Origin: Epithemia pelagica
Taxonomy: Eukaryota > Protista > Bacillariophyta
Direction: 5' to 3'
Assembly: GCA_946965045.2 (NCBI GenBank)
Contig: OX337232.1
Location: forward strand, 2,790,001-2,854,000
DNA: 64,000 nt
Shown: positions 2,195 to 47,136 of the stretch, one piece after another
Position numbering within the stretch: the first letter of the stretch is position 1
Layout: each line of letters opens with the position of its first letter
Position numbers and translations under genes: made by a program
Notes under the pieces: generated by a model
The model's database searches: none
What the model was told of the DNA's origin: nothing
Seen by the model: the letters and a program-made list of their open reading frames with translations, nothing else

Positions 2195-5100
2195 TCACAT
2201 ATGGACTGAGAAACTTTCATCGTCACTGGTGTAGTCCTGGGTAAGTTGAGGCGTACGTTCACCACCAAATATAGCTGACCATTCCATGTCAAATAATGCA
2301 TCAGTTACCATCCTGCCACCACATGAATAATATACATCCCTCATAAGAACTTCACCGGGATCTGGAATTTCTGTGACTGCTGATGGATTTGAAGATGCGG
2401 TTGATTTATCTTCTTTACCATCCTGACTGCGAGGGTCCAGATAATCGAAGAAGGAACTTTGTTTGTCGTCCAGGGTATTCAAAAGCTGATCTAAGGTCGA
2501 CGCCTCATCATCTAGCACCACAGGCTCATTGTCCCCTTTTCCCCCTTTTTTGGAACGTGATTTTGGGGTCGGACTAGGAGCTTTGTGTTCTTGTAACTCA
2601 AGGCGATCTTCATTCCAGGACATTTGCATTAGCAATACATTTTCTAAGGGTTCTTCCTCCTCTTTCCCAGGACTACGAGACCTTTTCTCATGCTTCAGCT
2701 TCTCCGGAGATTTGTTCGAGGGCTCGTCGTTCTCGGGTATGGGATTTTCATCCTGGATTTCAACACCAAGAATACTGATGTTGTCTGTCTCGTCTTCCCG
2801 ATCATAGTCTTGATCGTCTGTCGAAGGAATCGACGGGACAGGTTCTGAATCAGCTGCATATAATGGGCAAAGGTTCGTGGCAGCGTCAGATTGAGTTCAA
2901 TACGGAACTTCTGTTGGGACACAGCATACTATCTTACCTTTCTTATTCTTTCTTCGAACAAACTTTCCGAAGAAACTCGAACTCTTTGCTATTTCCTTTG
3001 TTTTCTTTGAGGGTTTCGCAGGGCGAGCACTTGAGCTTGATGTCACAGAACCAAATGTCCTGTCAATTTGGGCGGAAGCCTGAACTCTTGAACGACGACT
3101 ACTAGAACCAAGAGATATACCGACACTGGAACTTCGAGAACCTGAGTATTCACTATGGAAGCTTCCACTTCTCCCTAAACTGGAACTTCTGCTTCGTGAG
3201 AGTTCGCGGTAAGATGGTGACACGCTACGGTGTCTCCTGCGATTTTCAATTGCAACGCTTCTTTCGCTGCCCCTGCCAGATATTCGGTCTACATTTCCTT
3301 CAGTGGCAATGCTTAAGTTTTCATCATCGAAGGATTCGTCACGTTTCGTCTTCACATCAACTTTGGATTGCGAATATCCATGAGAATGGTTATCAATGGT
3401 GTCCTTCGGGCTGGTGGGCTCAGTTCCGGTCGACTCCATCGAAGTGTCCTGTGTCGTGTTTAAGGGGCTCTCTGGGAGACTCAAAAAGGGATCAACTATA
3501 TTTTTCAAAATGTCTTCTTCTTGGTCAGCGCTAGATGGACCAGCAGATTCCTTGTTCTCATTACTTGTACTTCGTCGAAACAATTTTGACAACATTGAAC
3601 TCCCAGTGCGTGCCGGGGCTTTGGGTGAAGATTTCACTCGGCCATCTTTCGCTGGATCTTTCCCTGAAACAATTGGTATTAAATCAATGAGTGGAGTTCG
3701 TTAACAACCGAGAGCTCAATGCAATTTGTACTCTTACCTGTTGGTTTTTTCTTCGGAACTGGAGGGGGCGTAGAACCTCTCAGGCTCTTTTTGGGAGGAC
3801 TTTTCTTAGCAGGGGAAGACCTACTATTTCGCTCCTGCGACGACTTTGAAACCCCTCCACTACGTCGGGTGTTGGGTAAGCTTTGAATATTTTTCTTGCT
3901 AACCCTGCCTTTCTCTCTAGACTGAACCGACCTGTTTGAGGGACTGGGAGGGTGCGTCGCACTGCCATTAGTCGACCCAGCGTCGCTTACACTTGCATGT
4001 TCTCCGGAAGTTCTCTGTGATTTGGAAATCCGGTCCTTGCCCTGATCAGCACCATTTTTTGAGGGCGTTCGAGGCTTTCTTTCAATTTCTGACCTATTTT
4101 TTGACTGCGTAGTAGGCTTTCTTTCCATCTCAGAACTATTCTTTGACTGCGTAGGAGGCTTTCTTTCCATCTCCGTGCTGCTCCTTGAAGGCGTAGGAGG
4201 GATAGGAGGCCTTCTTTCCATTTGAGGAACGTTTCTCGAGGGTGTATGAGGCTTTCTTTCCGTTTCAGAACTTTTTCTTGGAGGGGTAGGAGCCTTTTCC
4301 ATTTCGATTCCTTCTTCTTCTCTTTCCTGTTCAACGACGGCATTTGCAATGAATGGCTTCCGAGAAGAACTTGATTTGTTGTCATCGGTTTCGTCTTGTT
4401 TCTTGGTCTGCTTTTCCCCTTGCGATCCTGTCGGAGTCGCATGATCAAGTTTTGATGTTCCTGCCCTGATAGGATTCAACGGAACATCTTCTTCATTACC
4501 GTCACCATTACCTTTGCTCTTTTCGTCGGTTTTTGTTGACAAAGCTGGATGCCCCAGTGTTACGCCTTTTACGGACTTCTCGGTCGTTACCTTGTTTGTC
4601 CACTTGAGATTCAGGTAAAGTGTCGCTTGACGGAACGAGGTAAACTGGAGCAAGTCCCTGTCTGTTTTGATGGAGTGTTTTCGGTTGACAGAGTCGTCCA
4701 AAAAGTTGACATCGCCCTTGCTGGAGAATTCTGGAGAAAACCCATAGTCCGAAGAGGGGTTCAGAACCGTAAGATCCCAGGTTTTCGTGGGAATTCGAAT
4801 TATGGGGAAACGGTCCAAATCTTCCAGGACGTTCATCTTGAGTTTGACAACGGAGCTTGCTTTCGGTTCTTGTTTGTTTCCTGGAAAGGTGAGCCGTGTC
4901 CATGCGACGGGTAGAATCGCAGTAAAAGGCTCAGTCTCATTTCCTTTTCCAGAACGACGCCCTTTCGGTCGGTTATCATCTTTGTTTACTAAACCGAGTA
5001 TTACTCCCAAGTCTTGTGTTGAAAGAATGTCAACATTGGATTTTTGGGCCTTGGAGGAGGGAGTAGACGGCGAGGAGGTAGAGGACGAGAGACGGCAATC

Positions 5101-15705: not shown

Positions 15706-18700
15706 TCAAACATCAGCTTCTTGAATGCAGGACTTCACCACATGTGTTTTCTTCTTCTTTTTCATGTTGATTTTCTTAGACAGCTTGGTCATTGGCGTTT
15801 CTGTCCTCATAGTTTGAGACTGCACGCCAAGAGTCAAAGCCGTTTTCTCTGTGGCACCCTCCGCTCGCGCCCCGACCATCGCAGCTGCCTCTTGTTCCGC
15901 TGTCGAGTGTGCCTCATTTCGGTCACTCGTTGCGTTGGTGGTAGTTGTTTTATCGGTGTCTCCTGAATCTTCCGCGTTCGTGCTACCACTTCCTGGCCCT
16001 TTTCCCGTTGCTGCCTCATTTCCCTTCTTCAGAACAGCGCCTTCATATATCGCATTTGTGGTGGAGGCCTTCCTTTGCCCGGTACCATGCGCATAGTTAC
16101 CGATAATCGAGGCTGTTTCTTCTCCAGTTGCCGGTTCCACCTCATATCTCTCATTGGTTGCATTGGCAGCAGCTACTTCGTCTGCATCTCGTGCATTATC
16201 TACTTCCGTGGTGTCGTCTCCTGACCTTCCTTCCCTTGTCTCAACGCTTCCTTCGATCCCATGCGCCAAGGCATCGACTGTCGTAGCTATTTCTTGTTGA
16301 CCTGATGACTGTACATCATCTTTGTCTCCAAGTGAAGCGGCGGCAACACCTTCGTTTTCATCTCCTGTTTCCTCCACTTCCTTGTCGCGATCTCCTGATC
16401 CTTTTTCCGTTGTTTCCCCATTTTCCTCCTTTACAGCAACACCTCGGTTCAATCCATTTGGATTGCGAGCCTTTTGATGCCCGTATCCCTGAGCGATAGT
16501 CGCGGACGTTTCCTCATTTCTTTCATTGGTTACATTGGCAGCAGATGCTTCGTCTGGATGTCCCGAATTCTCCACTTCCCTGTTGTCATTGACCAAATCT
16601 TTTCTCATTGCTTCCAAATTTTCCTCCTTCACAACACTAACTCGAGTTGGCCTTTCACCGGCACCCTCTGCAGTGTAACTGATACTCGAGGCGGCTTCTT
16701 TTTCAGTTTCAGATTCTACTTCAGCTCTATTGGTGGTGACAGCTTGTTTTGTACCTGGCGATTCGTCCACTTCCATGTCCTCATCCCCTGATTCTTCCTC
16801 GTCCATATCACTAGGATGAAGGGCAGACTCGTTCTGATGTTTGTCGTTTGCTACACTGTCATGACTTTTTGCTGTTGCTGGCTTCTCGTGCTGGATTTCA
16901 CCAGACTCCGTGTTTTGATTCGCGCCAGTTTGAGTTGGAGCAGGTCTATTAGCATTGGGATCTCCTCGACTCATTGAGGATGTCACATTGTATTGAGCAG
17001 TCGATTGTTTCGCAGTTGCATCAATCCTGGCGGCCTTGGTGGCAACCTCTTTGTCGTTTACTTGCGCTCGTTGGTCCTCTTTCCTGTCCATGGAAGGAAC
17101 GGTAGTGCTCTTCCGTCCAACATGAGCATGGCTGTCCTCTGTGGGAGGTTGAGCTGGACTTGGCTCGTCCTTGACTACTGGTTTCTCTTCAGATTCTTGT
17201 GGTACCGTTTCGGACTTGGGTTTTTGATATGGAACAAAAACAACCTCCCCTTCGACCTTGATAGACGACGAGATCACAGCATCGGGACTTGCCGTACCAT
17301 TGGCACCCGTTGAGTTCGCCCCACTCGCCAATTCTGTCTTGTTGTCTACAGCGACATCAGATTCGTTTGCCTCTTGTGTCTTGTCCCCTCCGAGCTTGAA
17401 AGACCACGAGATCCGGGCCTTGGGAGTTGCCGCAGCTGTGCCACCCGTTGAGTTCGCCCCACTTGTCGACTGTTTCTTTTTGTCGTCTGCGGCATCAGAT
17501 TCGTTTGGCTCTTGTGCTGTGTCCTTGGAATTGGCACTGGCCTCTTTTGTTGTGTCCTTGGAATTGTCGCCGGATGAGTGAGGACGTGCACCATTTGGGA
17601 CCTGGTTCGCAGTTGGAGCTTCTTGGGGCGGGGCATCTGCAGCTGGAGCCTCATTTGGTGACTCGTCTGCAGTGGTTGTCGCAGCAGAGTTCGCCCCACC
17701 TATCGATTCTTTCTTGTGGTCCTCAGCGGCATCAGATTCGTTTGCCTCTTGTGCTTTGCTATTGGAAATGTCGTTGGAAAAGTCAGGATGGACCTGGTTC
17801 GCAGTTGGAGCTTCCTGGGGTGGGACATCTGCATCTGGGGCCTCATTTGGCGACTCGTCTGCAGTGGGCATTTCATTTTGCACGTCGCCAGCATTTGGGA
17901 ATATATTTGGCGAGTCGTCTGTCGTGGAGAATGTATCTGGCACGTCGTCTCCTGCAAAGACTGTATCCATGAAGTCATCTGGGGTGGGTGCTCGATCGAC
18001 CAAATCGTTGTAGGCATTCAGCCCAGTGTTGTCTTCCGGGGGTGGAAGGGACGCTTCTTCGGCTGGGAGCTCTGGCGTCTTCTCCCATTGAAATTGATAA
18101 AAAGGTTGCTGAGATGGTTGGTCGTCAATACCACCGACAAACTTGCCTTGTAGAGGCCGCAAGACATGTTCCAAGACCGGAATGCTACGTGCACTACCAA
18201 TCAAACGTTTCTTGTATTCTTCCGCTGTCAAACGCTCCGTGCTTCCTCGGGGGTACATTTGCAAGTAAAACTCCGGAGATCCTTGCCCATCATCCTGCAC
18301 GTCCAGGTGATAGGCATCTTTTCTGCCATGATATGCCCCTCGAAAGATGTAGAATCGACTGTCCAACTTGTTTCGCCAATGTTCTGAAAGGTCGGATCCA
18401 TCGGGGGACTGTGATAGCGGGAGACGGTTCTCGACCAAAATATCCATAATTGCCTTGTACAGTTCCTCAATTGGATTTAGATAATCCAAGGTAAAGCCCA
18501 TGAGCGCTGCGCGCTCCATCGCGGAAATGAATCGTTCTTGATAGCTTGGAGGATCGGTGTTTACTTTTTTGTAAACAGCCATGTTTTCGCTATCCAATGC
18601 CCGCTTCGATGACATGAGGGTTCGAACTTTGCCACCCACCATTTTAGGTTCATAAAACATGTAAGGAAGCAGGAACCTTTCTTCAGCATTGTTGTTCTGT

Positions 18701-20007
18701 TTTTCCAAATCTAGGCAACACGCTGGATCAGTCTCGGAGGTGGGCCCTGCAAAGTCAAAGGCATTCAGAGGAATGTTCGTGAAGTACGTGTTGCGGCGAA
18801 CGCAAGGCGAAAAATATTGGGCGTCCAACGTTACGTGCCACTGAAGATCGAGCGACTTGAGGATGACTTCACGATTGTCCTTTTCTTCTTCCAACTGAGC
18901 GGTATCTACTACGAATAAGAGGGGTGTCCCTTTTTGTTTGGGATGGTTCTTTATGTTTTGAACCATGCTTCCAACGCGTACCACGTAGGAACCTGTGAGA
19001 CCATGTACGCCATCTCGAGAAGGATCCAATCCAGGAGGAGAGGCTAACAAAAGGTCAATGGGACCATACTCTTCAATGACATGATCCAATCTCTGTTCTA
19101 CCTCTTCAAAGGTATCGTAATGAACAAAGTGCGGGCTTGTTGTTGAAGAAGAAACTCGCTGACCACATGAGGTACTCGTCTCCGCCTTCACATACTTGGC
19201 GTCGTGATTGGATCGGCACACATGCGTGGCGAGCTTGTCATGTTCGACATGAATTACTCTGGCAAGGGGGATTCCCAGTCTTTTCAATGCTAATTGCCCA
19301 CTTCCAATTCCTCCAAATAAATCTAAGACAACGGCCGACCGGTGAACAATTGGCAGTCTCTGAAACCATTCCCGATTTCGACAATATTCGGTATTTGCGT
19401 CCAGCAGAGTAATCGGATTGGAAGAACTGTTAGTAATGTCAAATTCAGACTCTTGTGGTCGACTGAGGAGGTATTTCTCGCGAACCTTGCCGTTTAAAAT
19501 CGTTCGAAGTTCCACACCAGGAAGTTCCATCTCACCAGTGAGAATGTCTGGACACAATTCATCAATGGTGTAATCCATTGGAAGCGCTGTTTCATACTCC
19601 ACTGTCCGAATAGAGTGACAACATTGCCGATGAAAGTAATGATCAGGCGAGGTTTGCATAAGTTGTGAATTGTCTGGACAGTTGCAGGTGCAAAAATCGC
19701 AACAAAAATGAATCCATTGGAGAAATTGTGCATCCGTCCAATTCTTAGCCTTATTTTCCGACTCAGAGGCTGCCTCCCGATGACTTCTATCAATTGTTCG
19801 TCGTTGTTTGTAACTGGGCAGTTTGCTGGTTTGGGAAGATGAGGCTTCGGCTGGAGGAGGACTGTCTGGTGACTCCTCCTCGTCGTCATCGCGTGATCTC
19901 CTTCGGGTTCTCCGAGAGGCGCTTGTTGACCTTCGACTCCGGGAAGACGGTCTACTGGACGAAGCGGAAGCGGTTGCTTTACGCTTGGGAGCCTTACTTC
20001 GTGCCAT
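15706..20007 (-). CDS. DNMT3-like C5 DNA methyltransferase-fold protein with degenerate catalytic motifs and a long disordered C-terminal tail
   Basis: Motif I VLDLFGGIGSG. YGPIDLLLASPPG aligns to DNMT3 WGPFDLVIGGSPC. DAQYFSPCVRRNTYFTNIP aligns to the motif VIII region. ERAALMGF. KRLIGSARSIPVLEHVLRPL aligns to motif X (RLLGRSWSVPVIRHLFAPL). The domain spans ~18150-19340. Confidence 0.8.
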   Translation of the reverse strand: MARSKAPKRKATASASSSRPSSRSRRSTSASRRTRRRSRDDDEEESPDSPPPAEASSSQTSKLPSYKQRRTIDRSHREAASESENKAKNWTDAQFLQWIHFCCDFCTCNCPDNSQLMQTSPDHYFHRQCCHSIRTVEYETALPMDYTIDELCPDILTGEMELPGVELRTILNGKVREKYLLSRPQESEFDITNSSSNPITLLDANTEYCRNREWFQRLPIVHRSAVVLDLFGGIGSGQLALKRLGIPLARVIHVEHDKLATHVCRSNHDAKYVKAETSTSCGQRVSSSTTSPHFVHYDTFEEVEQRLDHVIEEYGPIDLLLASPPGLDPSRDGVHGLTGSYVVRVGSMVQNIKNHPKQKGTPLLFVVDTAQLEEEKDNREVILKSLDLQWHVTLDAQYFSPCVRRNTYFTNIPLNAFDFAGPTSETDPACCLDLEKQNNNAEERFLLPYMFYEPKMVGGKVRTLMSSKRALDSENMAVYKKVNTDPPSYQERFISAMERAALMGFTLDYLNPIEELYKAIMDILVENRLPLSQSPDGSDLSEHWRNKLDSRFYIFRGAYHGRKDAYHLDVQDDGQGSPEFYLQMYPRGSTERLTAEEYKKRLIGSARSIPVLEHVLRPLQGKFVGGIDDQPSQQPFYQFQWEKTPELPAEEASLPPPEDNTGLNAYNDLVDRAPTPDDFMDTVFAGDDVPDTFSTTDDSPNIFPNAGDVQNEMPTADESPNEAPDADVPPQEAPTANQVHPDFSNDISNSKAQEANESDAAEDHKKESIGGANSAATTTADESPNEAPAADAPPQEAPTANQVPNGARPHSSGDNSKDTTKEASANSKDTAQEPNESDAADDKKKQSTSGANSTGGTAAATPKARISWSFKLGGDKTQEANESDVAVDNKTELASGANSTGANGTASPDAVISSSIKVEGEVVFVPYQKPKSETVPQESEEKPVVKDEPSPAQPPTEDSHAHVGRKSTTVPSMDRKEDQRAQVNDKEVATKAARIDATAKQSTAQYNVTSSMSRGDPNANRPAPTQTGANQNTESGEIQHEKPATAKSHDSVANDKHQNESALHPSDMDEEESGDEDMEVDESPGTKQAVTTNRAEVESETEKEAASSISYTAEGAGERPTRVSVVKEENLEAMRKDLVNDNREVENSGHPDEASAANVTNERNEETSATIAQGYGHQKARNPNGLNRGVAVKEENGETTEKGSGDRDKEVEETGDENEGVAAASLGDKDDVQSSGQQEIATTVDALAHGIEGSVETREGRSGDDTTEVDNARDADEVAAANATNERYEVEPATGEETASIIGNYAHGTGQRKASTTNAIYEGAVLKKGNEAATGKGPGSGSTNAEDSGDTDKTTTTNATSDRNEAHSTAEQEAAAMVGARAEGATEKTALTLGVQSQTMRTETPMTKLSKKINMKKKKKTHVVKSCIQEADV

Positions 20008-21354
20008 GGTCCAAACAAGTTATCTTTCTCCAGAATTTTGCATGACACCGCGTCGTGGGTTTTTGCGGGGAACAAGATCGCAAACGCAAACCGCTTTGAC
20101 TTTGAGTCACGGTGACATTCACACAGTGAGTGTAGTGACTGTGGTTCTAATTGCAACTCGTGACTCAACCCGGATGGAACACGTGGCGTCATGGACGTTT
20201 GCACCAAAATCTGAGACACAAAAATGAGCGGCAGAAAAAAATGCAACCCAACGGTATGACGACTCTCGTTGCTCATTGCTAACGGCTAGTATGACACTTG
20301 ACTTCAGAGACTTATGATGCTTTGGCACTCTTCGACACACACAAAGTTTTGTGCATCCGTGCATGTCGAGCCAGAAAGTTTGGTGATAACTGTCATGCAG
20401 AAATGCCAGTGCATGATGAGATTTTCGACATGAGACCACATCAAGGTCCGAATGATGGAACATTGTCTCGAAGAATTGCTCCTTTCCTCAATAACTTGAA
20501 CAAAACGAGCCGTCTGCTGAAAGTTCGAGCGAAGCAGAGAAGAAAAGCACCACACCAGAACTGGAAACCACGAGTATTTTACCAACGACGGAAAACCACG
20601 AGAACCGCTCAAAACTGCGTTCCCATGCTATATATCGGATCCGGTGATGGCAGTTCTCGAATAGGTTGTGGCCCGCCGTAGAAATTCTACTTCAGAATTC
20701 TCTGGAAAAAGTTTCTTGGAGGGACGATGAAACCTGGTTCAACGCAGTATCCACAAAGTACGAAACAAACCAAATGGATATTGGCGGCAACTGAGTGACT
20801 TGCTCGCCCCATCCAGCAAAGATCTCTGAGCGCAAACAAAATGTAATGGGTGGCCGATTCTTTATGGCTGCGATCTGGGACACAGAACCAGCACGCAAAA
20901 AGTTTTCTCGTAAAATTATCTTCAGCATGCAAAGGGCTACCTTCTCCGCAAACAAGGAAAGGGTTTGATGTGCGATCAAACGCTCTGACAAACACACTCA
21001 CACATTTGTCAATAGGGACTGCAGGTCGACTGAAACAGCACATTCTAACGATACCTCAAATTGACACAGGAAGCCTCGTGACAAGTGCCAAATCATACAA
21101 AAGAATTGCAATAAGCATATTCAGACGACTTTGTGTTGTGAGAAGCCAGTCAAAATGTAACCTACAAATGAAAAAAGCTCTTAAAGCGATAGCAAATGTT
21201 TTAGAGGTTCTCAAGGCGGTGATAGTAGCTATTTGTGTTCAAAATTGATAAAATTGCAAGGCTCAAGCTCAACAAAAATGATGGTGCCTTGGTAATCATA
21301 GGCATCAAAGGTGAGTGATGGCGTTGGCTAAATTCGGGTCGGCGAAATGATATA

Positions 21355-28465: not shown

Positions 28466-31400
28466 CTATCCCCTCTCCTCCTCAAACAGAACAACCTTTT
28501 CAGGTAGCTGTTTAGTCTCCCTGAACAACTCATAGAATCTCGCACACTCTTCCGAAATGCCTCTTGTTTTGTCCAAATTTAACGGCTGCCGCAAAAACAA
28601 ACCATTCAAAGTAGCACAACGAGACAAACACACATACACCCAATTATCCGTATAGTCCCATGAACTAATCACCAAATGACGCAACGACCTTCCCTGCAAT
28701 TTATGTCCTGTTCGTGCATTTGATACATTAATCGGAAACTGCTTCAGCCTCATAGTCTTCTTTATCCTCACATTCCTACCAAATTCCGGCAGAAGAAACT
28801 GAACAGTCGCTGTAACTTTTGTAGCCTCCAAATTCACTACGAAACCTTCAACACCATCTTGCATTGTCACTCTCAAACCCTGAACTTGTGACACACTGAC
28901 ACACCAAACAAAGTAGCCATCAATACATATCTTCTCCATATCACCAACTGTAACTCCTGGCATCAACACAACTTCACGGAAAGTGCACATTGCCCCATTA
29001 GCAACACACCTCTCAACATCGATATTGTCATTAATCATCAATGGACGACCATAGTAAAATTTCAACAATGGGTCGTAATGCTTATTATCTTTACTCTTAA
29101 CATGTCCTTCACCACAATACGCATATAACATGTCTTTACTGGCCGAATTAAAGTCCACATAGTCTCTTCTCGTCTTTGGCTTCTTCCAACGCAAGTCAGA
29201 CGCACGAACGCAAATCGTATGCAAAGGGGGGTCCCTTTCCGGATCCTTTGAATGTGTTTCTGCCAAATGTTTGCAAAAGATGGCATCGTTAATAGCCGCA
29301 CGATCAATGTTGGACTTTGTGGCATAATCTGCCGTAGACGGTATGTCGCTCTCACGTGGCCCCCTAGGACTACCAACAACACGTGTATTCAATGTATCCA
29401 GATCTATTGCATCAGGCCCAATATCTCTATACCTTGAAAGCAGTTCACCGTAATCTGGATCGTCGACGAATCTATGATTAGTTCGAAGCTCCATAAACGT
29501 ATGTACCCATTCATACCAATGTTCAAGATCCTTATACACAAACAAGGGGTATCCTTTCACGGGTTTCAACTGCGTAAAATCCCCAGCAAATAACACAGGA
29601 ATTCCTCCATATCGGGCAGTTGCATTTTCCTTGATCTCACGCAGTTTATGATGCAGACTTATAAGCACATCTTTGGATGCAAACGAAATTTCATCCACAA
29701 CCAACATATACGCATTTGTCCACTCCTCGACCTCTCCATCAACCTCTCGATTTATAGCACAGGCATTATGGGTTGTTTCACCATTTATACCAACAGCAGC
29801 TGCACCAGTAAGCGCGGTCACAACAATAGTCCGCTTGTCGTACTTAACACTCAAATTGCGGCACATGCTTTTGGCATATCGGACAACCGATTTTAAAACA
29901 TGGCTTTTCCCCGTACCACCTGCACCAGAAAGGAACGCGATGTATTGATGACCTCTATTCACTTTTTCCAATTCTTTTTTGCGTAAACTAAGAAACCTTG
30001 TATTCTGGTGGTTTGCCTCCAGTTCATCTTCGGAGTCGGCTGCTGCTTGTGTTCTATTTGCCTCCTTATATAATTCCAGCACAAACGCAGCTACTATTGA
30101 CTCAAAAGCTCTTTTTTGATCCACATCAGATCTAAAACACACATCCGCATACGCCCGAATATTCTCCAATGTCCCAGTTGCCTGCAGGTGACTGTTAGCA
30201 TCTACACCCATCACACGCTCACGAAAACGGACAGACAGTTCATGCAAACGTCTATAAGTGATTCTTCTTGATTCAAATACCTCCTCATCCACACTTGCAT
30301 GCTGTACAATGGTAGTACTGTCTGCTTGCTCATCAAAACTGACACGAAACACTGATGGCGACGAGTCAGGCAACTCCGGACAGACCACCAAGTTTTCACC
30401 ACATTTGTTTGTCCCACATGACCGAATAAACCTGCTATCAACTGCCAACAATCCATCAGCGTTTCTTAACAACGGCCGACTCACATCCAGGCACGAAATC
30501 AATTCATCAAAAACTGCATCCATGCCAGGGTCGATTCCTGTTTCGCACTCTTCCTCAGAATCACCTGCATCACCAACAACAAGCGATGGTTGCTCTGTCA
30601 CTCTTTCTAGAGAATCGCTCGGTCTCCCGCAATTAAGACTATTACGACAGTCTTGTATGTTTGAAAGAACCGTCAAATGCTGTTTTAAAATGATACCACC
30701 AGCCAAACCCTGCTGGAATTTCCCCAGATATCTCCCGTTCCCTGATCTAAGATCCCCTGTCTGCCGAAAGGGGTAAAAAAGAAGGCAGGCCTTCTTTGCA
30801 TAAGATTCCATGGCTGCCAAACCAGAATCAAGAACAACATCTCCCGATGCATCAACATTGTCAATTGACCGGTCCCCAAAAAATTTTGTATCAACAAAAT
30901 CCAGAAAGGAAATAAGTGGAATTTTGTCTTTCTTATTTTTTTTCAACACCAAATTACCCCGCGACGGATGCTCTGCTACCCACTCCATTCCACGGTTTTT
31001 AGAGGTCGCACGCCCAACAGAATAACTGCAGAGGAAGTCATAAAGACACACACCCTCTAAATCATGTGGCCTATATAAGTAATCAGCCACAGACGATTTC
31101 AGGAAAACCTCGCCGTCATAGGCATCACACGAAAACTTCTCAAGTTTGTCTGACTCAAAATCCCTGAGATCAACATATGCAAATTCATGCGAAAACCCAA
31201 AACGAGACTCATTCCTCAACAAAAACGCTGCCATTGGTGCACTGCATACGTGTGCCCCCGTAGAAAGCAAAACAGCACCAATTAGCCCACGCATACCGTG
31301 CAGGACTCTGTCATTATCAGTATCGGCAGTGTTATTCTCCCGATTCTCATTGTCCCCTAAATCGTTGCTTAAATACGTCTTCATTTTACAAACCATATGC

Positions 31401-34164
31401 TTCGCGGCAGAAGCAAAATGCTCATTGTCCTCATTCTGCGTATTCTTCGACACATAGCATGTCATATACACGACACTACCACCATCGACACCCGCAACCA
31501 CATTGGTGTTACAAGCAAACAGATTACTTGCCGCACGATTATGGATATTCATCATAACATCTGCTCTGGAACGCTTATGACCTACATGGAAAAGCTGTCG
31601 TGCACGGTTGTTCCCTTTCCAGTCGTACCAATTAGTGTAATGCTCATCAAAAACCGAAGTGGTTTTTTCAAAGGGAAGGTTGGGAATCTTCATCCGGCAT
31701 TCTCCCCCTTTTTTGAAACATGCTGTACAGTGATTCAAATTATGTAGGTTCCTCAAAGCTGCGACAAACCTTGCAGCTTGTTTATCGTCGAGGATCTTCG
31801 GAACAAACGGATGATTATGCCGCATCAATGCAAACTCCATAAGTAGCTGATATTTTGTGTGTTGTGAAGAAACATGTGGCCAAAACGGTTCATCGTCCCC
31901 CCCCTGCAGAGAAAACATTGGGTCAAGTAGGATTTTTACCAGATCCTCACTTGAGTAGCCTTTGTCACAAGTCCCACACTTCATAATTTGTTTCCCACCG
32001 AAAGCCGTCTTTCCAGCCCGTGTACGGAGATTTCGCAAGTCCTGCGCACTGCAGTGCTCCAAGACAGACCCAGAGCAGCCATCATTTGTGCACACCGGTT
32101 GACAATCGTTACCATGCAATTCCGCACTTGACACGGCTGACACATATTTCTCCATTTGCTTCTTGAACGTATCCCTGAGGCTTTCATCCGATAGCCCATT
32201 TAGCAATTTTGCCCAATCTTTCACCCACAGCAGAAAATGTGCATGTAGGGTTTTTCGTCCCTGTTCCTCAACTGCGTAACACCACGCACTTATGTCTCCA
32301 AATATTCGAAAGCAGGGTTTGTTTTTCTGTTCAGTTTCGTCCCACCCTATCAAATGTGCGATTGTAATCCGGAGTACATTCTCAAAATCAAATGCACACA
32401 GCCCTGGATTATCAACCCTAATTTCCTTACATTCCTTAGCATATTTTGCAAGTTCACTGAAATCACAAGTGAATGGATCGGGTGGTGGACGCTTGCCCGT
32501 CCCGTCCGTCGACATTACCCTGATTCTGTAGTTAATTGCATCCTCTGGTGTAATGGTAAACAACAAAGACGGCAAACCATGATGCGAAATCATCGAAAAC
32601 ATTCTCTGTCGGGCCCTTTTTGCCGCACCCGACGTATGGCCCATGGAAGAAGTAATCGCTCTCAACTTTTGAAGAAACATGTATCCCGGGGTGGAACATG
32701 ACACGTTGTCCTGCATCATCCGCAAGGCCTCCTCAATTGCCTCTGTCGAAATATCTGGAAACGACTGTGCTTGTGAATCAGACACCCTAAGGAAAGTATT
32801 GGCAACCATTCTTTGTCTCTCAAACATATTATGAAGGACACATATAAAGGCTGCCCCATGAAAACGTGATGGGGCTAACATAGACAAATGTTTCAGATAC
32901 CCAACCCCCTGCCGCGATTCACCCTCCGAATTACGACCGCCAATTCTGTAGGGAAACTGAAGGGGGAACGCACGAATCAAGTTGTCACCCTCATAATCAC
33001 GGAGTAGATGTGGGGTTGGCCGGGATATCAATGTTGCTTGCTTGTCAGACTCTGGTGTTACTAAATTTTCTACAGAAGCATTTCTGAACTCCTGCTGAGT
33101 CGCGAACCCACCATTACCTGTTTTGGGTTCATCAGAGTCCGGGAAAACCGCATTGATTTCAAAAACCAGCTCGACATTTGACGACGATTCAGGAACAATC
33201 TCTGCTTTGTCAAGGAAAATTGGTTTCAGCATTGCATCTGTTGGGAGATCATATTCTGCATATAGTGGGTTATTTGCTTTTAACCATACCAGTGCATTTT
33301 GCATTTTTTCCCATCTCACTTCGGTTTTCTCCCTAACTTTTGCACGCTGGGATGACGTAAACGGGCCGCACAATACCACCGCGATTGTAGGAATGTATAA
33401 CTTCTTTTCTGCGTTTTCTTCCCCACCCAAGCTATCATTGCTTTCTCCTTGCTGGTGTCGTCGTGTGGTTGCCTAATTACACCAATTAACAACGCCATTG
33501 ACGGCATCAAGGTCATTATAGTACAGCGAATGCCATCCCCTTATTGATTTATGGCTACCAGCGGTAAATGAAAAAATGTGTTTGTTTGTCCTAGCGGGCG
33601 CTATCATAGCCAATTCAACCTCATTAAGGTCTGTCAAACACACAGGAGGCTTTCCAATCGATAGGCCGTTAACAATGGCATAGCGTGGTGGGGTGCAGTC
33701 ACCTTTCTTGTTTTTCATGTTCTGAAGGTGCGAGTGACAAGCCCTACAGCATCCAAGGCCTTCTTTTGTGCCCTTTTGGCGGGGTATGATTTGGGGGACA
33801 AAACCAAATTGTTCAGAAACTTATACTCCTTTCGCCTAGTCGTATAACAGTGCTGTGTATAGTGCTTCTGGATAGCAACCTGCCCTTCCTGTTTAATCCC
33901 ATACTCCAACAAACCCAAGTTCTTCTTCGACAACACAGAACACAAACGTTTGTGACGGATGTCCTGTATGGTCAAGCATTTCTCATCACCGTATGGAATC
34001 AATGTGTCACAAACACAGCATATTTTTGCGTTTGAGTTGCCCTGTGCGTCTGTGTACAACAACCCATTGCGCGCAGATTCTGCATTTCTAATGCCCTGAG
34101 ATCTTGCCCTAAAATCTGCATTCATGACTAAAATGAAGCTAAAAATCAAATAAACAAAATGCAT
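28466..34164 (-). mobile_element. Helitron RepHel gene (Helitron2-like, no APE endonuclease), disrupted by one frameshift and one nonsense codon
   Basis: Rep motifs GLPSLLFTITP, VEEQGRKTLHAHFLLW and YMTCYVSK. Pif1 helicase motifs GAGGTGKS, DEIS, GDFTQL, HKLQGRSL and YVCLSR. The N-terminal Cys/DUF6570-like region is split over ORFs 33715..34164 and 33473..33718. Frameshift near 33770; in-frame TAG at 33473-33475. Confidence 0.92.
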
Positions 34165-40028: not shown

Positions 40029-43000
40029 TCATTCTGAACTCAGTCGAACAGGACGAGGGGAATAGATTGGTGTCACCGGGGCGAAATTCGGTCTTGCTAG
40101 GTTTGCCAGCTGGGTTGTGCGCGATCTTTGCGCAGATGTATGTGCTCTGTTGGCCGCAATTTGGTTGTTTGCATGTATCGCCAGGGACGAAACGATGGTG
40201 TGTGCCAGGGATGCTTTGGCGTAATGGGCGATTGTGTAGATGTTGGCTTCTGGATAGTGCAGTTTGGTGTCTTTGTTGGCTCGAGAGAGGATGTTGTCGG
40301 GAGCGTGTTCAACGTTCTGGTAAAGTGCGTATGCTGCTGGGTGTCGATTGCTTCGGGCGGCAGATTTGCCGAAGTGTGGATCGGTCCAGTCCGGCGGTTC
40401 AGCTGTGGAAAAGGGCAATGGGTGGTCGTGGTTGAAGAGAAGTCGGTTGGCAAAGTGGCCGAGCGATCCCAAGTGGTCCACTGTGAAGGGGATCAAGTAG
40501 ATACCATTCTGGAGTAAGTGTGTGGCGGTGTCCGGATCACGGCAGTATTTTGCCCTTGCCGCTTCGTGATGCGTCCTCGAGGCAACTTGTGCGATGAATT
40601 TGTGGTCGGACGGGTCTGGAAGGGGTGTTGGGGTCTGCGGAGGCGGAATTGTTACGTCAATGGCTACGTATCGGAACGGGTCATTTTGATGTGGTTGGGT
40701 GAGAAGCATGCCGACGTCGGCCGGGCGAATGTTGCGGCTGTGTTGTGGAGCCAAGCCCGGTGGCTCAAGGTGGACATCATGGAGTGAATCAACTGCTTTC
40801 GCGGCGGGCGCCGCATGGCGGAGGATGTCAAAAAGGGTGTCACGCACGGCGTTGGACAGTGCGGTTTTGGAGGCCTGGTTGCAATGAAAGAGGTGGTCGC
40901 CTGTTCGGTCAAGGGTCTTGCTGCAGCGGCATCGACTGTTGGTTTGGGTGTGGAGGAGTGGTAGCCGGAGTTTTCTACGTATTGCTGTCCGAAAGATTGG
41001 ATTGTCGAGTCGAAATCGTTCGGCGGGGCGTGGGAGGTGGAGTGCCATACTCGTCAACGGTGACAGGAGTGAAGGGAGGAATGCGCGTTGTGTGGGATCG
41101 GTGAGTTCGATCAGTCTGGGAATTACATGTTCTTTGAAGACATGGTTGAGTTGTCGGTTGTGGGTAGTATGATCGAAACGATCGGGGTCATGCAGTGTTT
41201 GGTCGGCGTATTCGGCATTGAAAAGTGACAGGCCTTTGCGGTAAGCTGTGATGGCCGGGTCTTCGCTATGTTCCCAGTTGATGTATTGTTGTTGGTGATG
41301 CGTTGGGACGGGGGAAGATTTGGACAGCGCCAGTTTGATTGCTCGTGCAGTTTGTGTAATGAGACGTGGGTATGCTGCTGCGGCGGCGTTGTGGTATCCC
41401 AGCCCTCCCAGTCGGTTGGGCAGGGAGGCAATGGTTGTTGTTTGTTCGGTTACGTCGGTTTCGACACACGAGGCGAGTGTGGACACAAACTTACCAATCA
41501 ACCGGTTGGTTGTTGCCGTGATTGGGCTTGTCCACAGGGTGGATCTCTGGTTGGCAGGTGGGTTGGCTTGGACGATATCGGCAGGTAGGAGGTGGAGAAT
41601 TGCCGGTATGAAGGAATACCGAAAAAGACTGCTTCTTGTTTGAAGGTCGTCTAGTTGGTTCAGTTTGTCTAGGTTGGTTTCCATCGTTTGGAGTCGTTCG
41701 CGGAGAAATTGTAGGGCAAATTGTGCCGAGCCGATGGGCTGTCCGAGGAAGCGGGTGCCTGAGGTCAGTTCTGGTGTATTTGGGTTGGCGGGACAGAGAA
41801 GGGTCAGTGCCTGTTGGAGGCATTGTTGGTGGTGGACGGGCAGTCTGTCCTTGGGGGATACCTGTGTGGTTGAGGTAAGAATCTTTGTTTTTGTGCCGTT
41901 GAGTTGGATTCCCATGGGCTCACCCAGCTGTTGAAACCGTTGAATGAACCAGTCGATATCCGGGTGGGGTAGGCAAATGGATGTATCATCCATAATCGAC
42001 GCCGTGTGCGCGATGCCGCCTTTGCCGTCGTCATAGTTATCGCCGTTGGCTGTTCTTGCCGCTGCCCTCGCGGCTTGTTCTTTGTTGATGCGATTTGTCA
42101 GTGCCAACAGAAGGAGGCATGAGAATAATGGGCTGAGAGGACAGCCCTGTGGGAATCCTTCCTCTTGGAGGAAGTAATCTGGATTGTGGTTTGCATCGAA
42201 GAACCATGATTGGCAAGGTTTGCCCGTGAGCAGGTCATAGAAGGGGACCAGTGGTGCGGTAGCTGGATCGTTGATGAGAATTTCGCGTGCTGCCGTCCTT
42301 GAAGTGTTGTTGAACATGTTGCAAAGGTCCAATAGGAGGAGGCTGCGTGATGGTAAGTTGTCTTCGTTGTCCCGGTGGATATATTTGTGGACGGCTGCCG
42401 TGGTGGTTTGGGCGACGAAATCCACGCCACCTGGAGTTTGAATTCTGTATTGTCCTCCCTTGAGGAGGATGGGCCGTACTGCATCAGTCATGTGTACTAA
42501 CGCTGTTTTTGCCGCGAGTCGTCGCAGGGCGATTCCGATGCCTATGGGCCGGAGTTTTTCCAAATTTGTCAGATCTTTGTGGAGGGCCAAGAAGTAGTTT
42601 CCCGCTAGGAGTGTTTGGATTGTTGTTGGTATTTGTCCCGTAACAATCAACTGGGTCAGTGCCATGAGGTTGGAGAAGTATGGTCTGGTGGCGTCAGGTG
42701 TGTTTGCTGTTTTATGCAACGCCATTGAGACGAGTGCGTCCGTGCAAGTGGCGTACGGGCCCGAGGCGGTTCCCGGTTTCATTTGGCGCAAGGACAGTTC
42801 GAAAAGGTCCTTGGTGAGTTGCAAGTGTTGTCTTGCTGGTGGCGGAGATTGCACAGTTCCTGTTGCTCTTGTTCCTGGTGGGGGGTTCCGCCGTTTCGGA
42901 AACAGTTCTTCTTGTATTCTTGCAATCCGTGGCGGGGTGAGTTTTGCTGTGGGCATATGCGACATCAAGCGCTTGTACGCTGTCGTGTAATTTCCGACGT

Positions 43001-43856
43001 TTGCTGCGTGTTGAGCAGACTTCAGTCTGTTCGGGGGCAGTTGTGTCGTCGTTTGTGGTTGTTGGTGGTGTCTTGACGGTTTCTTTGGTTTGTTTCTGTT
43101 GGTGTGCCGGTGGTTGGTCGGCAGTGGTTGTGGGTTCCAGGTCATTTCGTGTAATTCTTTGATCCGGCCATTCTTGAAGAGGCTTACTCGTGTGCGGAGG
43201 GCGTCGGAGTGTGTCCTGTGTACGGTTCCTTTGATAGGTGCGAGTAACAGGGGTTCAAGCAGCACCAGAAGTTTCCAAAACGGGGTGCTGTCATTGTTCC
43301 ATGCTGGTGGTTGGTCGTCGCGGAGGACAGAGGGGTGTAGTTCCGGGGTGGATTCCAGTACCCATGAAACGACGGTGTTGTAACAGACGAAAAACTCTCG
43401 ACGCAGTGGGTGCTTGAGTTTGTGCCAAGTGGTGCGGCGAAAGGGTGGTGGCTGGGGTTGGAGTTGGTGTAGCCAGGCTATGCTCTCTTTCCAGTGTGCT
43501 TGTGCCTGTGGGGATAGATGTCGGTAGGTGGTTGTAACTAGGTCGATGTTTGTTTTTTTCCTACTATGTTTTGTTGTTATATGTTGTTTGAGGTGCCTTG
43601 GTGTGGTGTAGATGGTGCTGGGAGTGTCGCAGTGGCGGCAAATGTGGAAACTGTGAGTTGTGCAGTATTCAGGGGTCATGTAGTCGGTTGGTGACGTTTC
43701 TTTGTGTTGGGTGATGAGGTGCTCTTTAAGAGCCGCCTGTGGTTTTCTGTTGATTGTTGGCACCTGCCAGTTGCAGTTGGGGACTGGGCAGTGCCGTATT
43801 CGTTGTGCCTGCCTACTCATTTGGCTCCTTGGCCCATGTATCATGCGGGACCACAT
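40029..43856 (-). CDS. Retrotransposon ORF2: zinc fingers, reverse transcriptase, CCHC and restriction-like endonuclease
   Basis: N-terminal C2H2-like fingers. RT motifs LRPIGIG..LRRL, QY.IQTPGG, LDLCNMFN, GFPQGCPLSP and IMDD. CRC...D..GDHLFHC, RPADV, AIDVT and PFTVDHLG are characteristic of the CRE clade. Confidence 0.93.
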   Translation of the reverse strand: MWSRMIHGPRSQMSRQAQRIRHCPVPNCNWQVPTINRKPQAALKEHLITQHKETSPTDYMTPEYCTTHSFHICRHCDTPSTIYTTPRHLKQHITTKHSRKKTNIDLVTTTYRHLSPQAQAHWKESIAWLHQLQPQPPPFRRTTWHKLKHPLRREFFVCYNTVVSWVLESTPELHPSVLRDDQPPAWNNDSTPFWKLLVLLEPLLLAPIKGTVHRTHSDALRTRVSLFKNGRIKELHEMTWNPQPLPTNHRHTNRNKPKKPSRHHQQPQTTTQLPPNRLKSAQHAANVGNYTTAYKRLMSHMPTAKLTPPRIARIQEELFPKRRNPPPGTRATGTVQSPPPARQHLQLTKDLFELSLRQMKPGTASGPYATCTDALVSMALHKTANTPDATRPYFSNLMALTQLIVTGQIPTTIQTLLAGNYFLALHKDLTNLEKLRPIGIGIALRRLAAKTALVHMTDAVRPILLKGGQYRIQTPGGVDFVAQTTTAAVHKYIHRDNEDNLPSRSLLLLDLCNMFNNTSRTAAREILINDPATAPLVPFYDLLTGKPCQSWFFDANHNPDYFLQEEGFPQGCPLSPLFSCLLLLALTNRINKEQAARAAARTANGDNYDDGKGGIAHTASIMDDTSICLPHPDIDWFIQRFQQLGEPMGIQLNGTKTKILTSTTQVSPKDRLPVHHQQCLQQALTLLCPANPNTPELTSGTRFLGQPIGSAQFALQFLRERLQTMETNLDKLNQLDDLQTRSSLFRYSFIPAILHLLPADIVQANPPANQRSTLWTSPITATTNRLIGKFVSTLASCVETDVTEQTTTIASLPNRLGGLGYHNAAAAAYPRLITQTARAIKLALSKSSPVPTHHQQQYINWEHSEDPAITAYRKGLSLFNAEYADQTLHDPDRFDHTTHNRQLNHVFKEHVIPRLIELTDPTQRAFLPSLLSPLTSMALHLPRPAERFRLDNPIFRTAIRRKLRLPLLHTQTNSRCRCSKTLDRTGDHLFHCNQASKTALSNAVRDTLFDILRHAAPAAKAVDSLHDVHLEPPGLAPQHSRNIRPADVGMLLTQPHQNDPFRYVAIDVTIPPPQTPTPLPDPSDHKFIAQVASRTHHEAARAKYCRDPDTATHLLQNGIYLIPFTVDHLGSLGHFANRLLFNHDHPLPFSTAEPPDWTDPHFGKSAARSNRHPAAYALYQNVEHAPDNILSRANKDTKLHYPEANIYTIAHYAKASLAHTIVSSLAIHANNQIAANRAHTSAQRSRTTQLANLARPNFAPVTPIYSPRPVRLSSE

Positions 43857-46800: not shown

Positions 46801-47136
46801 TTGTTTGGTTTTTCGCAGACGAGGTAGAAGTTCCATGACGAGTGGAAGAGTCGCCTTGCTTGCCCAGGCTGTCTCGGGACATGTGGGTTCGGTTTGGGGG
46901 ATTGATCGGCATTTCGGTCGTGGTTGAACCATAGGTCGTGCAGTTTGAGCCGAGTTTGACCATGGCGGGTCCGCGGGGCGCGCCGTTTGCGGCGCGGCCG
47001 TCATCCGCGGCAGGTTTAGGCAGGAAAGGGGCGGCGCAGTCTCGGCAAGGCGTTGATGTCGGCCCCAGAGTAGTTCACAGGATGGTTTCTTTGTTGTGTT
47101 CGGTTCAAAGTTCGGTTTTTTTTTTATTTTCCCCAA
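43813..47136 (-). CDS. Retrotransposon ORF1 (1107 aa; disordered termini, central globular region)
   Basis: Uninterrupted ORF upstream of ORF2 and overlapping it by 44 nt. The true start may be a downstream ATG. Confidence 0.8.
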   Translation of the reverse strand: MGKIKKKPNFEPNTTKKPSCELLWGRHQRLAETAPPLSCLNLPRMTAAPQTARPADPPWSNSAQTARPMVQPRPKCRSIPQTEPTCPETAWASKATLPLVMELLPRLRKTKQNQLPPNGNPAHGQRTQPAAAGPKRPKRQNGHSDQHEFVHTPKTTEQQNTEATGQHTTQKADKPNADTMDTVHFAIPTLPGSNPNQQAPPSAQKPTRSTTTQTDTRLLQPRGPATPTPSHQRNDRPNDSKRRQTKRTTLENPVFPKLPACSRSPQSSDPPTSTMHVHSKPTLGRPPAHRGNKLAPAVTTKRSPTYKSSGKPSRNHSPTMEPPAAEQQHLTDATTITPEKNTHKHHDGSNQHTNTGTELSHQTNQKNDKNQTNENTNNHKNDKNQSNDNTNTHKDDKHQAKDSAGNHTQPIPATHYNIAANTGGEDNKDSTETNQPPTDEPNDEENHNGPTNSEPNNETTTPIHNPYRKSPAPKTKKPPAQEPAILIHLHVAVNHNPNPQVEATLPRLTEESLTEHFNHVFQHHNKREDPMWLQVHSMDFIETKQSGRPTGRNQNESPNRPRGGHTSTFHMTLSPAPANDQFDTEVFTEQGLRFALQLWHRHHQSDFLFDEYGYQYILRPGTAQSNPTVNPRYDQIHVYVPACNNRTSDTFGIIVGVPAMAVKHRRGFMDLALAIRECLYPHLPKKLQGDDFFDHIGCRGGTFSGDLKSKQRGQVQVIYLAASSRSNFEALLRSYNAFRASNRGMEMEWTDNTIQLLPMPKNQTTRTTTLEALKDVDQYFGACIKIKLRHINHEATDDEWAQLKDMEEFVALFPEFCNEDPSPQAYTLYLRRTPDTHHLNGTTIRQHNGFPTNILLPSLAAIAATPPSPESTTQQQGNSTPSSHTSRLLEFTDRLLRRKPTNRGKTNRASPPGTPPPTKRAAPNHDSSDHSEKSDPYDDGTDWQTVIAKSPQLQNPTHPDDGKPKAKKRANQYDDLADELSDDDNVESNHNQSRNSNDEDEEMADADEWDNHSHSLLTPEDDHHNGQSAPTGDEIAMIFSYVRENNPSRLPEIRRYLENTRSFATDTDAQDAWEYAQSLVETGPPTIAGTRTGHVVPHDTWAKEPNE

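Follow-up and report, generated by a model that had tools for sequence, protein, structure and literature searches.

Gene and protein layout

The stretch analysed here, called the window throughout, comprises 64,000 nucleotides of the diatom Epithemia pelagica (GenBank assembly GCA_946965045.2, contig OX337232.1, positions 2,790,001 to 2,854,000 of the forward strand). Its minus strand carries a long open reading frame (ORF) whose product, the window protein, has the fold of a DNMT3-type DNA methyltransferase and lacks the catalytic residues of that family. An earlier note, made by eye from the DNA, had described the interval 18150-19340, equivalent to residues about 223-620 and running from motif I to motif X, as a DNMT3-like domain in which the catalytic signatures are lost and the fold and S-adenosylmethionine (SAM) motif are kept, and had proposed that it is a selected pseudo-enzyme. 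Our analysis indicates that the window protein is very probably a selected, catalytically dead paralog. Features are listed in Table 1.

The ORF is uninterrupted, as the earlier note had stated, and forms a single exon as read; the other two frames of the same interval on the minus strand contain 42 and 76 stops. A public gene call, P0001, begins at M160 of the 1433-residue protein. We favour the upstream ATG at 20007, since residues 36-160 are homologous to P0002, a relative described below. The Ser-, Arg- and Lys-rich residues 1-89, judged by composition, probably form a nuclear localisation region, and P0002 likewise opens with a basic stretch. The long C-terminal tail contains 153 acidic (D/E) against 77 basic (K/R) residues, has 14% hydrophobic residues and is probably disordered. 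It shows no similarity to the tail of P0002, with alignments between the two proteins stopping near residue 643. A 260-residue ORF in another frame, 19494-20276 on the minus strand, overlaps the start of the gene and appears as a public call (L002, 9255-10037). Pfam gave no match for this ORF, which is probably spurious.

Table 1. Features of the methyltransferase-like gene in the window, and pairs of DNMT3-family and Piwi-domain genes at other loci
Feature	Position	Strand	Remarks
Whole ORF	15706..20007	-	1433 codons plus stop
Ser/Arg/Lys-rich N-terminal stretch, residues 1-89	19741..20007	-	Composition S 25%, R 18%, K 8%
Cys/His cluster FCC-x2-C-x-C ... H-x2-CCH, residues 100-132	19612..19710	-	Conserved across family
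DNMT3-type methyltransferase-fold domain, residues about 222-622, catalytically degenerate	18142..19344	-	AlphaFold2 model, Foldseek, family profile
Motif I DLFGGIGS (SAM pocket), retained	19300..19323	-	F231, G233 and G235 match family-invariant columns
Motif II HVEHDK, acidic E255 retained	19234..19251	-	Aligns with Glu of ASEVCED in DNMT3A chain
Motif IV and catalytic loop LLLASPPGLDPSRDGV	19006..19053	-	Catalytic Cys replaced by Gly326 (GGA, 19030-19032)
Motif VI LFVVDTAQL	18892..18918	-	ENV replaced by D368-T369-A370 (GAT ACC GCT, 18898-18906)
Motif VIII YFSPCVRRNTYFTNIP	18769..18816	-	First Arg, R404, kept; second Arg replaced by N406 (18790-18792)
Motif IX MERAALMGFTLDYL	18478..18519	-	E498, R499 and G504 retained; family Pro replaced by Thr506
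Motif X KRLIGSARSIPVLEH, retained	18166..18210	-	GS in window protein and P0002, GN in family
C-terminal tail, 793 residues, low-complexity, acidic, internal repeats	15706..18087	-	Composition; open frame throughout
Tandem duplication within tail, 138 bp, 2 copies at 79% identity	17246..17524	-	Repeats visible in protein too
DNMT3 gene with Piwi-domain ORF	L008:2001-3860 with 4490-4873	opposite strands	PF02171
DNMT3 gene with Piwi-domain ORF	L009 and L010:489-2372 with 2697-3191 / 2685-3179	opposite strands	PF02171

Family membership and predicted fold

A word search with the full-length protein returned, under its length filter, one relative, P0002 (about 43% identical), which comes from another assembly (ERZ25042306); a domain-only search and an exhaustive profile search were then used. 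The exhaustive search recovered 509 relatives at E<=1e-3 and 234 at E<=1e-10. All named members of the resulting family are diatoms: Phaeodactylum tricornutum, Entomoneis paludosa (P0004), Epithemia clementina (P0007) and Nitzschia sp. Nitz4 (P0011 and P0022), which agrees with the diatom setting suggested in the earlier note. Judged by these relatives, the source of the window is a raphid pennate diatom. The set corresponds to the DNMT3 family described for diatoms (Hoguin et al. 2023, PMC9998398), and the window protein is a member of it. P. tricornutum XP_002180434/B7G088 clusters with P0013, whose motif I lies near residue 247, consistent with the PF00145 match at residues 242-475 that the supplement of PMC9998398 gives for the Phaeodactylum DNMT3. 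The P. tricornutum gene is named Phatr3_J47136 in the text and supplementary figure of that paper and Phatr3_J46156 in its Supplementary Data 1 and 4.

Comparisons with known structures agree with the DNMT3-type fold that had been proposed. Among PDB sequences, phmmer matched the window protein to tobacco DRM (1.7e-6) and human DNMT3B (1e-4). An AlphaFold2 model of residues 90-640, built from a 68-sequence family alignment, reached a predicted local distance difference test score (pLDDT) of 89.5 and a predicted template modelling score (pTM) of 0.91. The best PDB matches of this model in Foldseek were the catalytic domains of DNMT3B, DNMT3A and DNMT3C, with probability 1.00 and template modelling scores of up to 0.86 on the target. 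The family profile scored DNMT3A at 8.5e-43, DRM2 at 1.8e-27, DNMT2 at about 1e-10 and DNMT1 at about 6e-6, giving an E-value order of DNMT3A far ahead of DRM2, which in turn was far ahead of DNMT2, DNMT1 and DNMT5.

Members of the family share a set of hallmark motifs: motif I, LDLF[GAS]G[IV]G; motif IV, GGPPC-x-DYS-x-VNA-x-R-x-G; motif VI, FFLAENV; motif VIII, DA-x-Y-x-SPCRR-x-RHF-x-TNIP; motif IX, ERE-x-LMGFP-x-GY; and motif X, RLLGN-x-FS-x-PV. A further hallmark, FCC-x3-C-x-C ... H-RRCCH, lies toward the N-terminus. Within it C102, C103, C106, C108, H126, C129 and C130 (numbered as in the window protein) are invariant among 20 family members and H131 is nearly so; in a comparison with 19 relatives, the window protein keeps all the invariant columns. 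This cluster is a putative zinc-binding module, as judged from its pattern of Cys and His residues. It has no Pfam match and no fold match in the PDB (best E = 7), and when modelled alone it gave a pLDDT of 71 and a pTM of 0.37. The diatom DNMT3 family has been described as free of extra chromatin domains (PMC9998398), and no PWWP, ADD, chromo or BAH domain was matched by Pfam in the window protein at E<=1.

Loss of the catalytic signatures

Active-site residues were placed by sequence and profile alignments of three kinds: phmmer alignments to tobacco DRM and human DNMT3B, a 33-sequence family alignment, and the family profile against DNMT3A. All three were concordant. The frequency of each residue in the family was counted from 184 family sequences aligned to a hidden Markov model of the intact members.

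The motif IV Pro-Cys, motif VI Glu-Asn-Val and motif VIII Arg-x-Arg of active C5 cytosine methyltransferases are all absent from the window protein, and the three substitutions read by eye in the earlier note are each upheld. Motif IV reads LLASPPG, as compared with GGPPC in the family and GGSPC in DNMT3A, and Gly326 occupies a column that is Cys in 117/133 covering sequences. The catalytic loop that follows has lost five residues where the family has xVNAx; no Cys falls at the catalytic position on alignment, and none is found anywhere in the loop. The Glu of ENV, replaced here by Asp, is conserved in 143 of 146 sequences. Motif VIII reads SPCVRRN, against SPCRRxR in the family and SAAHRAR in DNMT3A, and its second Arg is present in 133/144. 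Only the window protein, among all 184 sequences, lacks all three catalytic residues.

Motif I of the SAM pocket follows the FxGxG pattern, with LFGGIG at residues 230-235, and motif X is kept and reads RLIGSARSIPVLEHVL at 18166-18210; both the family alignment and the profile alignment to DNMT3A bear out the earlier statement that motifs I and X are retained. The full-length protein has no significant Pfam match, and PF00145 (DNA_methylase) is not listed for it at E<=1; the excised domain scores 15.7 bits against a cut-off of 22 bits, which the relative P0002 passes at 26.6 bits.

In C5 methylation the thiolate of motif IV attacks C6 of the cytosine and the Glu of motif VI protonates N3 (PMC2965745). 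Because the thiolate Cys and the Glu are absent, the loop is shortened and the second Arg is gone, there is a strong case from the alignments that the window protein is excluded from canonical C5 catalysis.

Phylogeny and shared loss of the catalytic cysteine

A maximum-likelihood tree was built solely from 36 members of the diatom DNMT3 family, with no outgroup families. The window protein nests inside this tree, which includes the P. tricornutum cluster; a phylogeny with diatom DNMT3/5 had been proposed as a check in the earlier note. It forms a clade with P0002 and P0006, of the form (window,(P0002,P0006)), with support of 100/100. The sister group of this clade (support 100/99) consists of P0005, P0003 and the Entomoneis protein P0004, all of which have PPC, ENV and RxR.

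The window protein and P0002 share the replacement of the motif IV Cys by Gly, of the motif VIII Arg by Asn, and of the motif X Asn by Ser. Read most simply, these shared changes mean that activity had already been lost in the ancestor common to the two. ENV was lost later and in the window lineage alone, because P0002 retains it. P0157 and P0002 are two alleles of one gene, 98.6% identical and flanked by the same neighbouring genes; between the window and the P0002 locus, no synteny was found except for the gene itself. A further copy of the P0002 gene, partial and disrupted, lies in L003 (see below).

These relatives also bear on the quality of the sequence. A sequencing or assembly artefact might account for PPG and DTA, and the Cys to Gly replacement has been given as a single-base change (TGY to GGA). 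But PPG occurs in four independently assembled sequences (the window, P0002, P0157 and the L003 copy) from two assemblies, turning ENV into DTA requires all three codons to change, and the catalytic loop is shortened in frame. We regard an artefact as exceedingly improbable; the earlier note had allowed that further sequence might restore PC and ENV, and the independent sequences agree on PPG.

Evidence for purifying selection

The window protein and P0002 were compared over 524 aligned codons of the domain. The NG86 method was undefined for this pair, as synonymous sites are saturated, and only the maximum-likelihood estimate was usable; it gave 0.42 non-synonymous substitutions per site (dN), a saturated synonymous distance (dS, 3.3) and a dN/dS ratio (omega) of about 0.13. 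In the 36-member tree, the path from the common node measures 1.08 for the window protein, 0.87 for P0002 and 0.74-0.94 for the intact sisters.

A second measure of constraint was taken from 92 columns that are each at least 80% conserved among intact members. Of these, 74 are kept in the window protein and 76 in P0002. The 18 losses in the window protein are clustered in the catalytic and target-contact segments. In the catalytic part they include G323, C326, the Asn and Ala of VNA (both deleted), the three residues of ENV and the second Arg; elsewhere they include A466, R470 and R475, in the segment FMAS-x2-R-x-DD-x-RM that lies after motif VIII and before motif IX, and the motif X Asn. The residues of motifs I and II and all eight candidate Cys/His ligands are untouched. 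Since omega is about 0.13, branch lengths are like those of intact kin and 74/92 columns are kept, the sequence comparisons support purifying selection on the window protein since the loss of the Cys. The selected character of the pseudo-enzyme, as first proposed, is thereby strengthened, and the ortholog P0002 shows constraint, not decay. The allelic comparison of P0002 with P0157 yielded five non-synonymous and four synonymous differences, too few to inform.

An internal control for decay is available at positions 5458-6627 of L003 (ERZ25042306 ctg3178l), where a duplicate of the 5' part of the P0002 gene, corresponding to codons 13-404, is found at 91.5% nucleotide identity. This duplicate is truncated past motif VIII, contains two in-frame stops, and has broken Cys/His and motif I residues. 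With its stops read as X, omega is 0.72-0.87 at 8.5% nucleotide divergence. It is a genuine decaying pseudogene.

The same comparison helps to judge whether the gene in the window is itself a pseudogene that has stayed open by chance. Three catalytic signatures are lost, PF00145 scores below its cut-off, and the L003 copy demonstrates that a relative has in fact decayed; that copy, however, acquired two stops within 8.5% nucleotide divergence, whereas the window gene has kept 1433 codons open where other frames hold dozens of stops. Its omega is low across a saturated synonymous distance and relative to a partner that shares the Cys loss, its branch is in effect no longer than those of intact kin, and the conserved columns that it keeps include every one of the Cys/His ligand candidates. 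Decay is thus a very unlikely explanation.

Loss of the cysteine elsewhere in the family

The window protein is not the only member affected. The catalytic Cys is absent in 16/133 family sequences, and its loss requires at least four changes on the 36-sequence tree. In Nitzschia sp. Nitz4, an intact protein, P0011, pairs with a degenerate one, P0022, at support of 100/97; P0022 has PPR in motif IV and E-I in place of ENV, and its branch is twice as long as that of P0011. Further members lacking the Cys are P0070, P0085, P0087, P0147 and several fragments.

An intact paralog in the same assembly

P0008, on contig ctg1210l of assembly ERZ21939226 (the same accession as the window), retains the intact motifs AGPPC, ENV and KRKR. 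It groups with the Epithemia protein P0007 at 100/100, in a different clade from the window protein, which makes the dead gene an old paralog of P0008. Tetranucleotide frequencies of the P0008 stretch and the window are correlated at 0.92-0.94, much as the two halves of the window are with each other (0.93), and the ERZ25042306 loci correlate with the P0008 stretch at 0.70-0.89. This composition fits the presence of P0008 and the window in one genome, short of proof. Codon usage did not distinguish the assemblies, and no repeats common to the P0008 contig stretch and the window were found.

Comparison with known methyltransferases and their inactive relatives

The window protein resembles other members of the diatom DNMT3 family in its Cys/His cluster, in the canonical order of motifs I-X, in the long insert between motifs IX and X, and in having no PWWP, ADD or other chromatin domains. 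It differs from them in lacking the Cys, ENV and second Arg, in its shortened loop, in its 793-residue acidic tail and in falling under the Pfam threshold for PF00145. Human DNMT3A and DNMT3B provide the best fold and sequence-profile matches, with a clear motif-by-motif correspondence, but sequence identity to the window protein is only about 17%. The window protein has neither the PWWP and ADD domains nor the catalytic residues of the human enzymes, and has instead the Cys/His module and an insert of about 75 positions between motifs IX and X.

Two inactive relatives of de novo methyltransferases serve for comparison. Mammalian DNMT3L is an inactive derivative of the DNMT3 fold without the motif IV Pro-Cys, and occurs together with active DNMT3 enzymes, which need it as a stimulating and targeting partner; de novo methylation depends on both Dnmt3L and plant DRM3, paralogs with catalytic mutations (PMC2965745). 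The window protein, likewise an inactive DNMT3-fold derivative without Pro-Cys, is of independent origin, as it branches inside the diatom family. DNMT3L chains were absent among the best 60 of 66 PDB matches of the family profile and among the matches of the window protein. In addition, DNMT3L is not known to have the SAM-pocket motifs I and II, which are kept in the window protein; the window protein has no Pfam match to ADD/PHD. In DRM proteins a circular permutation places motifs VI-X before I-V, and UBA domains are present, whereas the window protein has the canonical order and no UBA. DRM3 is moreover without the Glu of motif IX and the Gly of motif X (PMC2965745), both of which are kept in the window protein (E498 and G604), and here too the origins are independent. 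The likeness to DNMT3L and DRM3 is that of a conserved dead paralog only, with no relation by descent.

Possible functions of the window protein

Taken as a whole, the gene is probably a pseudo-enzyme, a diatom DNMT3 paralog without the ability to methylate C5 that purifying selection has maintained for a role other than catalysis. The alignments and the tree give the following course of events. The motif IV Cys had changed to Gly and the second motif VIII Arg to Asn before the window protein and P0002 diverged; the window lineage afterwards lost ENV, five residues of the catalytic loop and two conserved Arg residues of target recognition. Motifs I, II, IX and X meanwhile remained conserved, as did the hydrophobic core and the N-terminal Cys/His cluster. 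The resulting protein is predicted to be nuclear and to fold still, and may still bind SAM. It might then act, as partner or adaptor, alongside the machinery of DNA methylation or chromatin, with its Cys/His module and its long acidic tail providing targeting or protein contacts. By analogy with DNMT3L-DNMT3A and DRM3-DRM2, the likeliest form of such a role would be pairing with an intact DNMT3 paralog such as P0008.

A role specifically as cofactor or targeting subunit of DNA methylation, which the earlier note had suggested by the same analogy, can be put forward only tentatively. Broader still is the proposal that diatoms evolved helpers of the DNMT3L/DRM3 type independently and more than once, with a Cys-less paralog pairing with an intact DNMT3 and directing or licensing de novo methylation through its Cys/His module and acidic tail; this we regard as somewhat doubtful.

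Retention of the SAM pocket raises the question of whether the protein is an enzyme that has acquired a new function, binding SAM and either acting on another substrate (RNA, protein or a small molecule) or working by a mechanism that does not depend on a Cys in motif IV. Selection has conserved motifs I and II along with most columns of the Rossmann core, a difference from mammalian DNMT3L, and a Cys in motif VIII (SPC, C402) that is conserved family-wide lies near the active site in sequence. C402, however, is equally conserved in intact members, and hence is not a replacement nucleophile. Moreover, the motif IV thiolate and the Glu of ENV, both needed for C5 methylation (PMC2965745), are gone, the loop that enters the DNA is shortened, and no new conserved polar active-site residues were seen that are specific to the Cys-less clade, in which P0002 and the window protein differ at ENV. 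A new enzymatic function therefore seems improbable.

We also consider it unlikely that the non-catalytic role lies outside DNA methylation altogether, for example in a protein that binds chromatin or nucleic acid and in which the old fold serves to support the Cys/His module and the tail. Such a role would suit the long, unrelated and lineage-specific tails of the PPG proteins (793 residues in the window protein and about 300 in P0002), as well as the drift of some helper-type positions, such as the AFG that follows motif VI in the family and is SLD in the window protein. Yet the dead DNMT3-type paralogs that have been tested, Dnmt3L and DRM3, act in the methylation pathway (PMC2965745), the same assembly also contains an intact paralog, and the C-terminal helix through which DNMT3 forms dimers is conserved together with motif X.

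Several points weigh against a conserved, non-catalytic partner of a methyltransferase. The partnership itself is argued purely from analogy, and the retained SAM-pocket motifs could point instead to surviving enzymatic activity. Presence of P0008 in the same assembly may not mean presence in the same genome, as the source may be a metagenome assembly; in the assembly of P0002 an intact paralog was not found, in a non-exhaustive search that gave proteins of other samples. As to selection, the omega of about 0.13 is approximate because dS is saturated, and the comparison of the P0002 and P0157 alleles is uninformative. The clade of Cys-less proteins to which the window protein and P0002 belong is thin, with two species-level members known, and since P0002 still has ENV the two proteins may not be functionally equivalent.

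Implications for diatom DNA methylation

Accessory proteins such as "DNMT3-like" factors have been proposed as worth seeking in diatoms, and no DNMT3 mutant could be obtained in Phaeodactylum (PMC9998398). The window protein is a concrete candidate for such a factor. The earlier note knew of no described diatom equivalent, and we likewise found no catalytically dead diatom DNMT3 described in the literature that could be searched. If the proposed partnership is real, it would be the third independent case of a de novo methyltransferase with an inactive paralog as partner, after mammalian DNMT3L and plant DRM3, and would offer a handle on the targeting of methylation in organisms whose DNMT3s carry no chromatin-reader domains.

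The Cys-less members also affect how diatom methyltransferases are counted. Because 16/133 family sequences lack the catalytic Cys, through at least four losses, inventories based on PF00145 or on gene counts may overstate the number of active enzymes, and may at the same time miss the most degenerate members. The PF00145-based screen in PMC9998398 used a relaxed cut-off of e = 1; it could retrieve proteins like that of the window, and motif-based filtering may drop them.

Neighbouring genes and mobile elements

We considered whether the methyltransferase-like gene might be carried by a transposable element. This was rejected, as its flanks hold ordinary genes, encoding an Asp/Arg hydroxylase, HisRS and an amidoligase, and more than 8 kb separate it from the Helitron. 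That element, about 8.5 kb from the gene, is represented by a 1654-residue ORF at 28466-33430 on the minus strand with Helitron_like_N and PIF1 helicase domains, and is a Helitron-type transposon. A second region, 40029-47136 on the same strand, contains two long overlapping ORFs of 1275 and 1107 residues, the first with a weak reverse-transcriptase match. Its GC content is raised (0.53-0.55) and its strand asymmetry is strong, with a GC skew of +0.25 to +0.34 and an AT skew of -0.2 to -0.38, and it is probably a retroelement.

Mobile elements are also found around the relatives of the gene. The surroundings of the decayed copy in L003 are rich in transposable elements, with RVT_2 and Plant_tran ORFs close by, and the copy adjoins a reversed fragment that is also present downstream in L001 (21460-22169). 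On the P0157 contig (L007:9261-10659, compared with L001 downstream of 12775), ORFs with DUF8418 and Plant_tran (Harbinger-type) domains lie directly downstream of the gene, and the same two types of ORF stand beside the truncated copy in L003. This arrangement hints that a transposon mediated the partial duplication of the P0002 gene.

Two observations concern the neighbours of intact family members. A JmjC-domain gene (Cupin_8/JmjC_2) is located near P0008 on the opposite strand, at L011:13566-15743 (ERZ21939226 ctg1210l). P0181 and P0009, intact DNMT3-family genes on metagenome contigs, each have a Piwi-domain ORF (PF02171) directly downstream on the opposite strand (Table 1), and linkage between DNMT3 and Argonaute/Piwi genes may be conserved in some diatoms.

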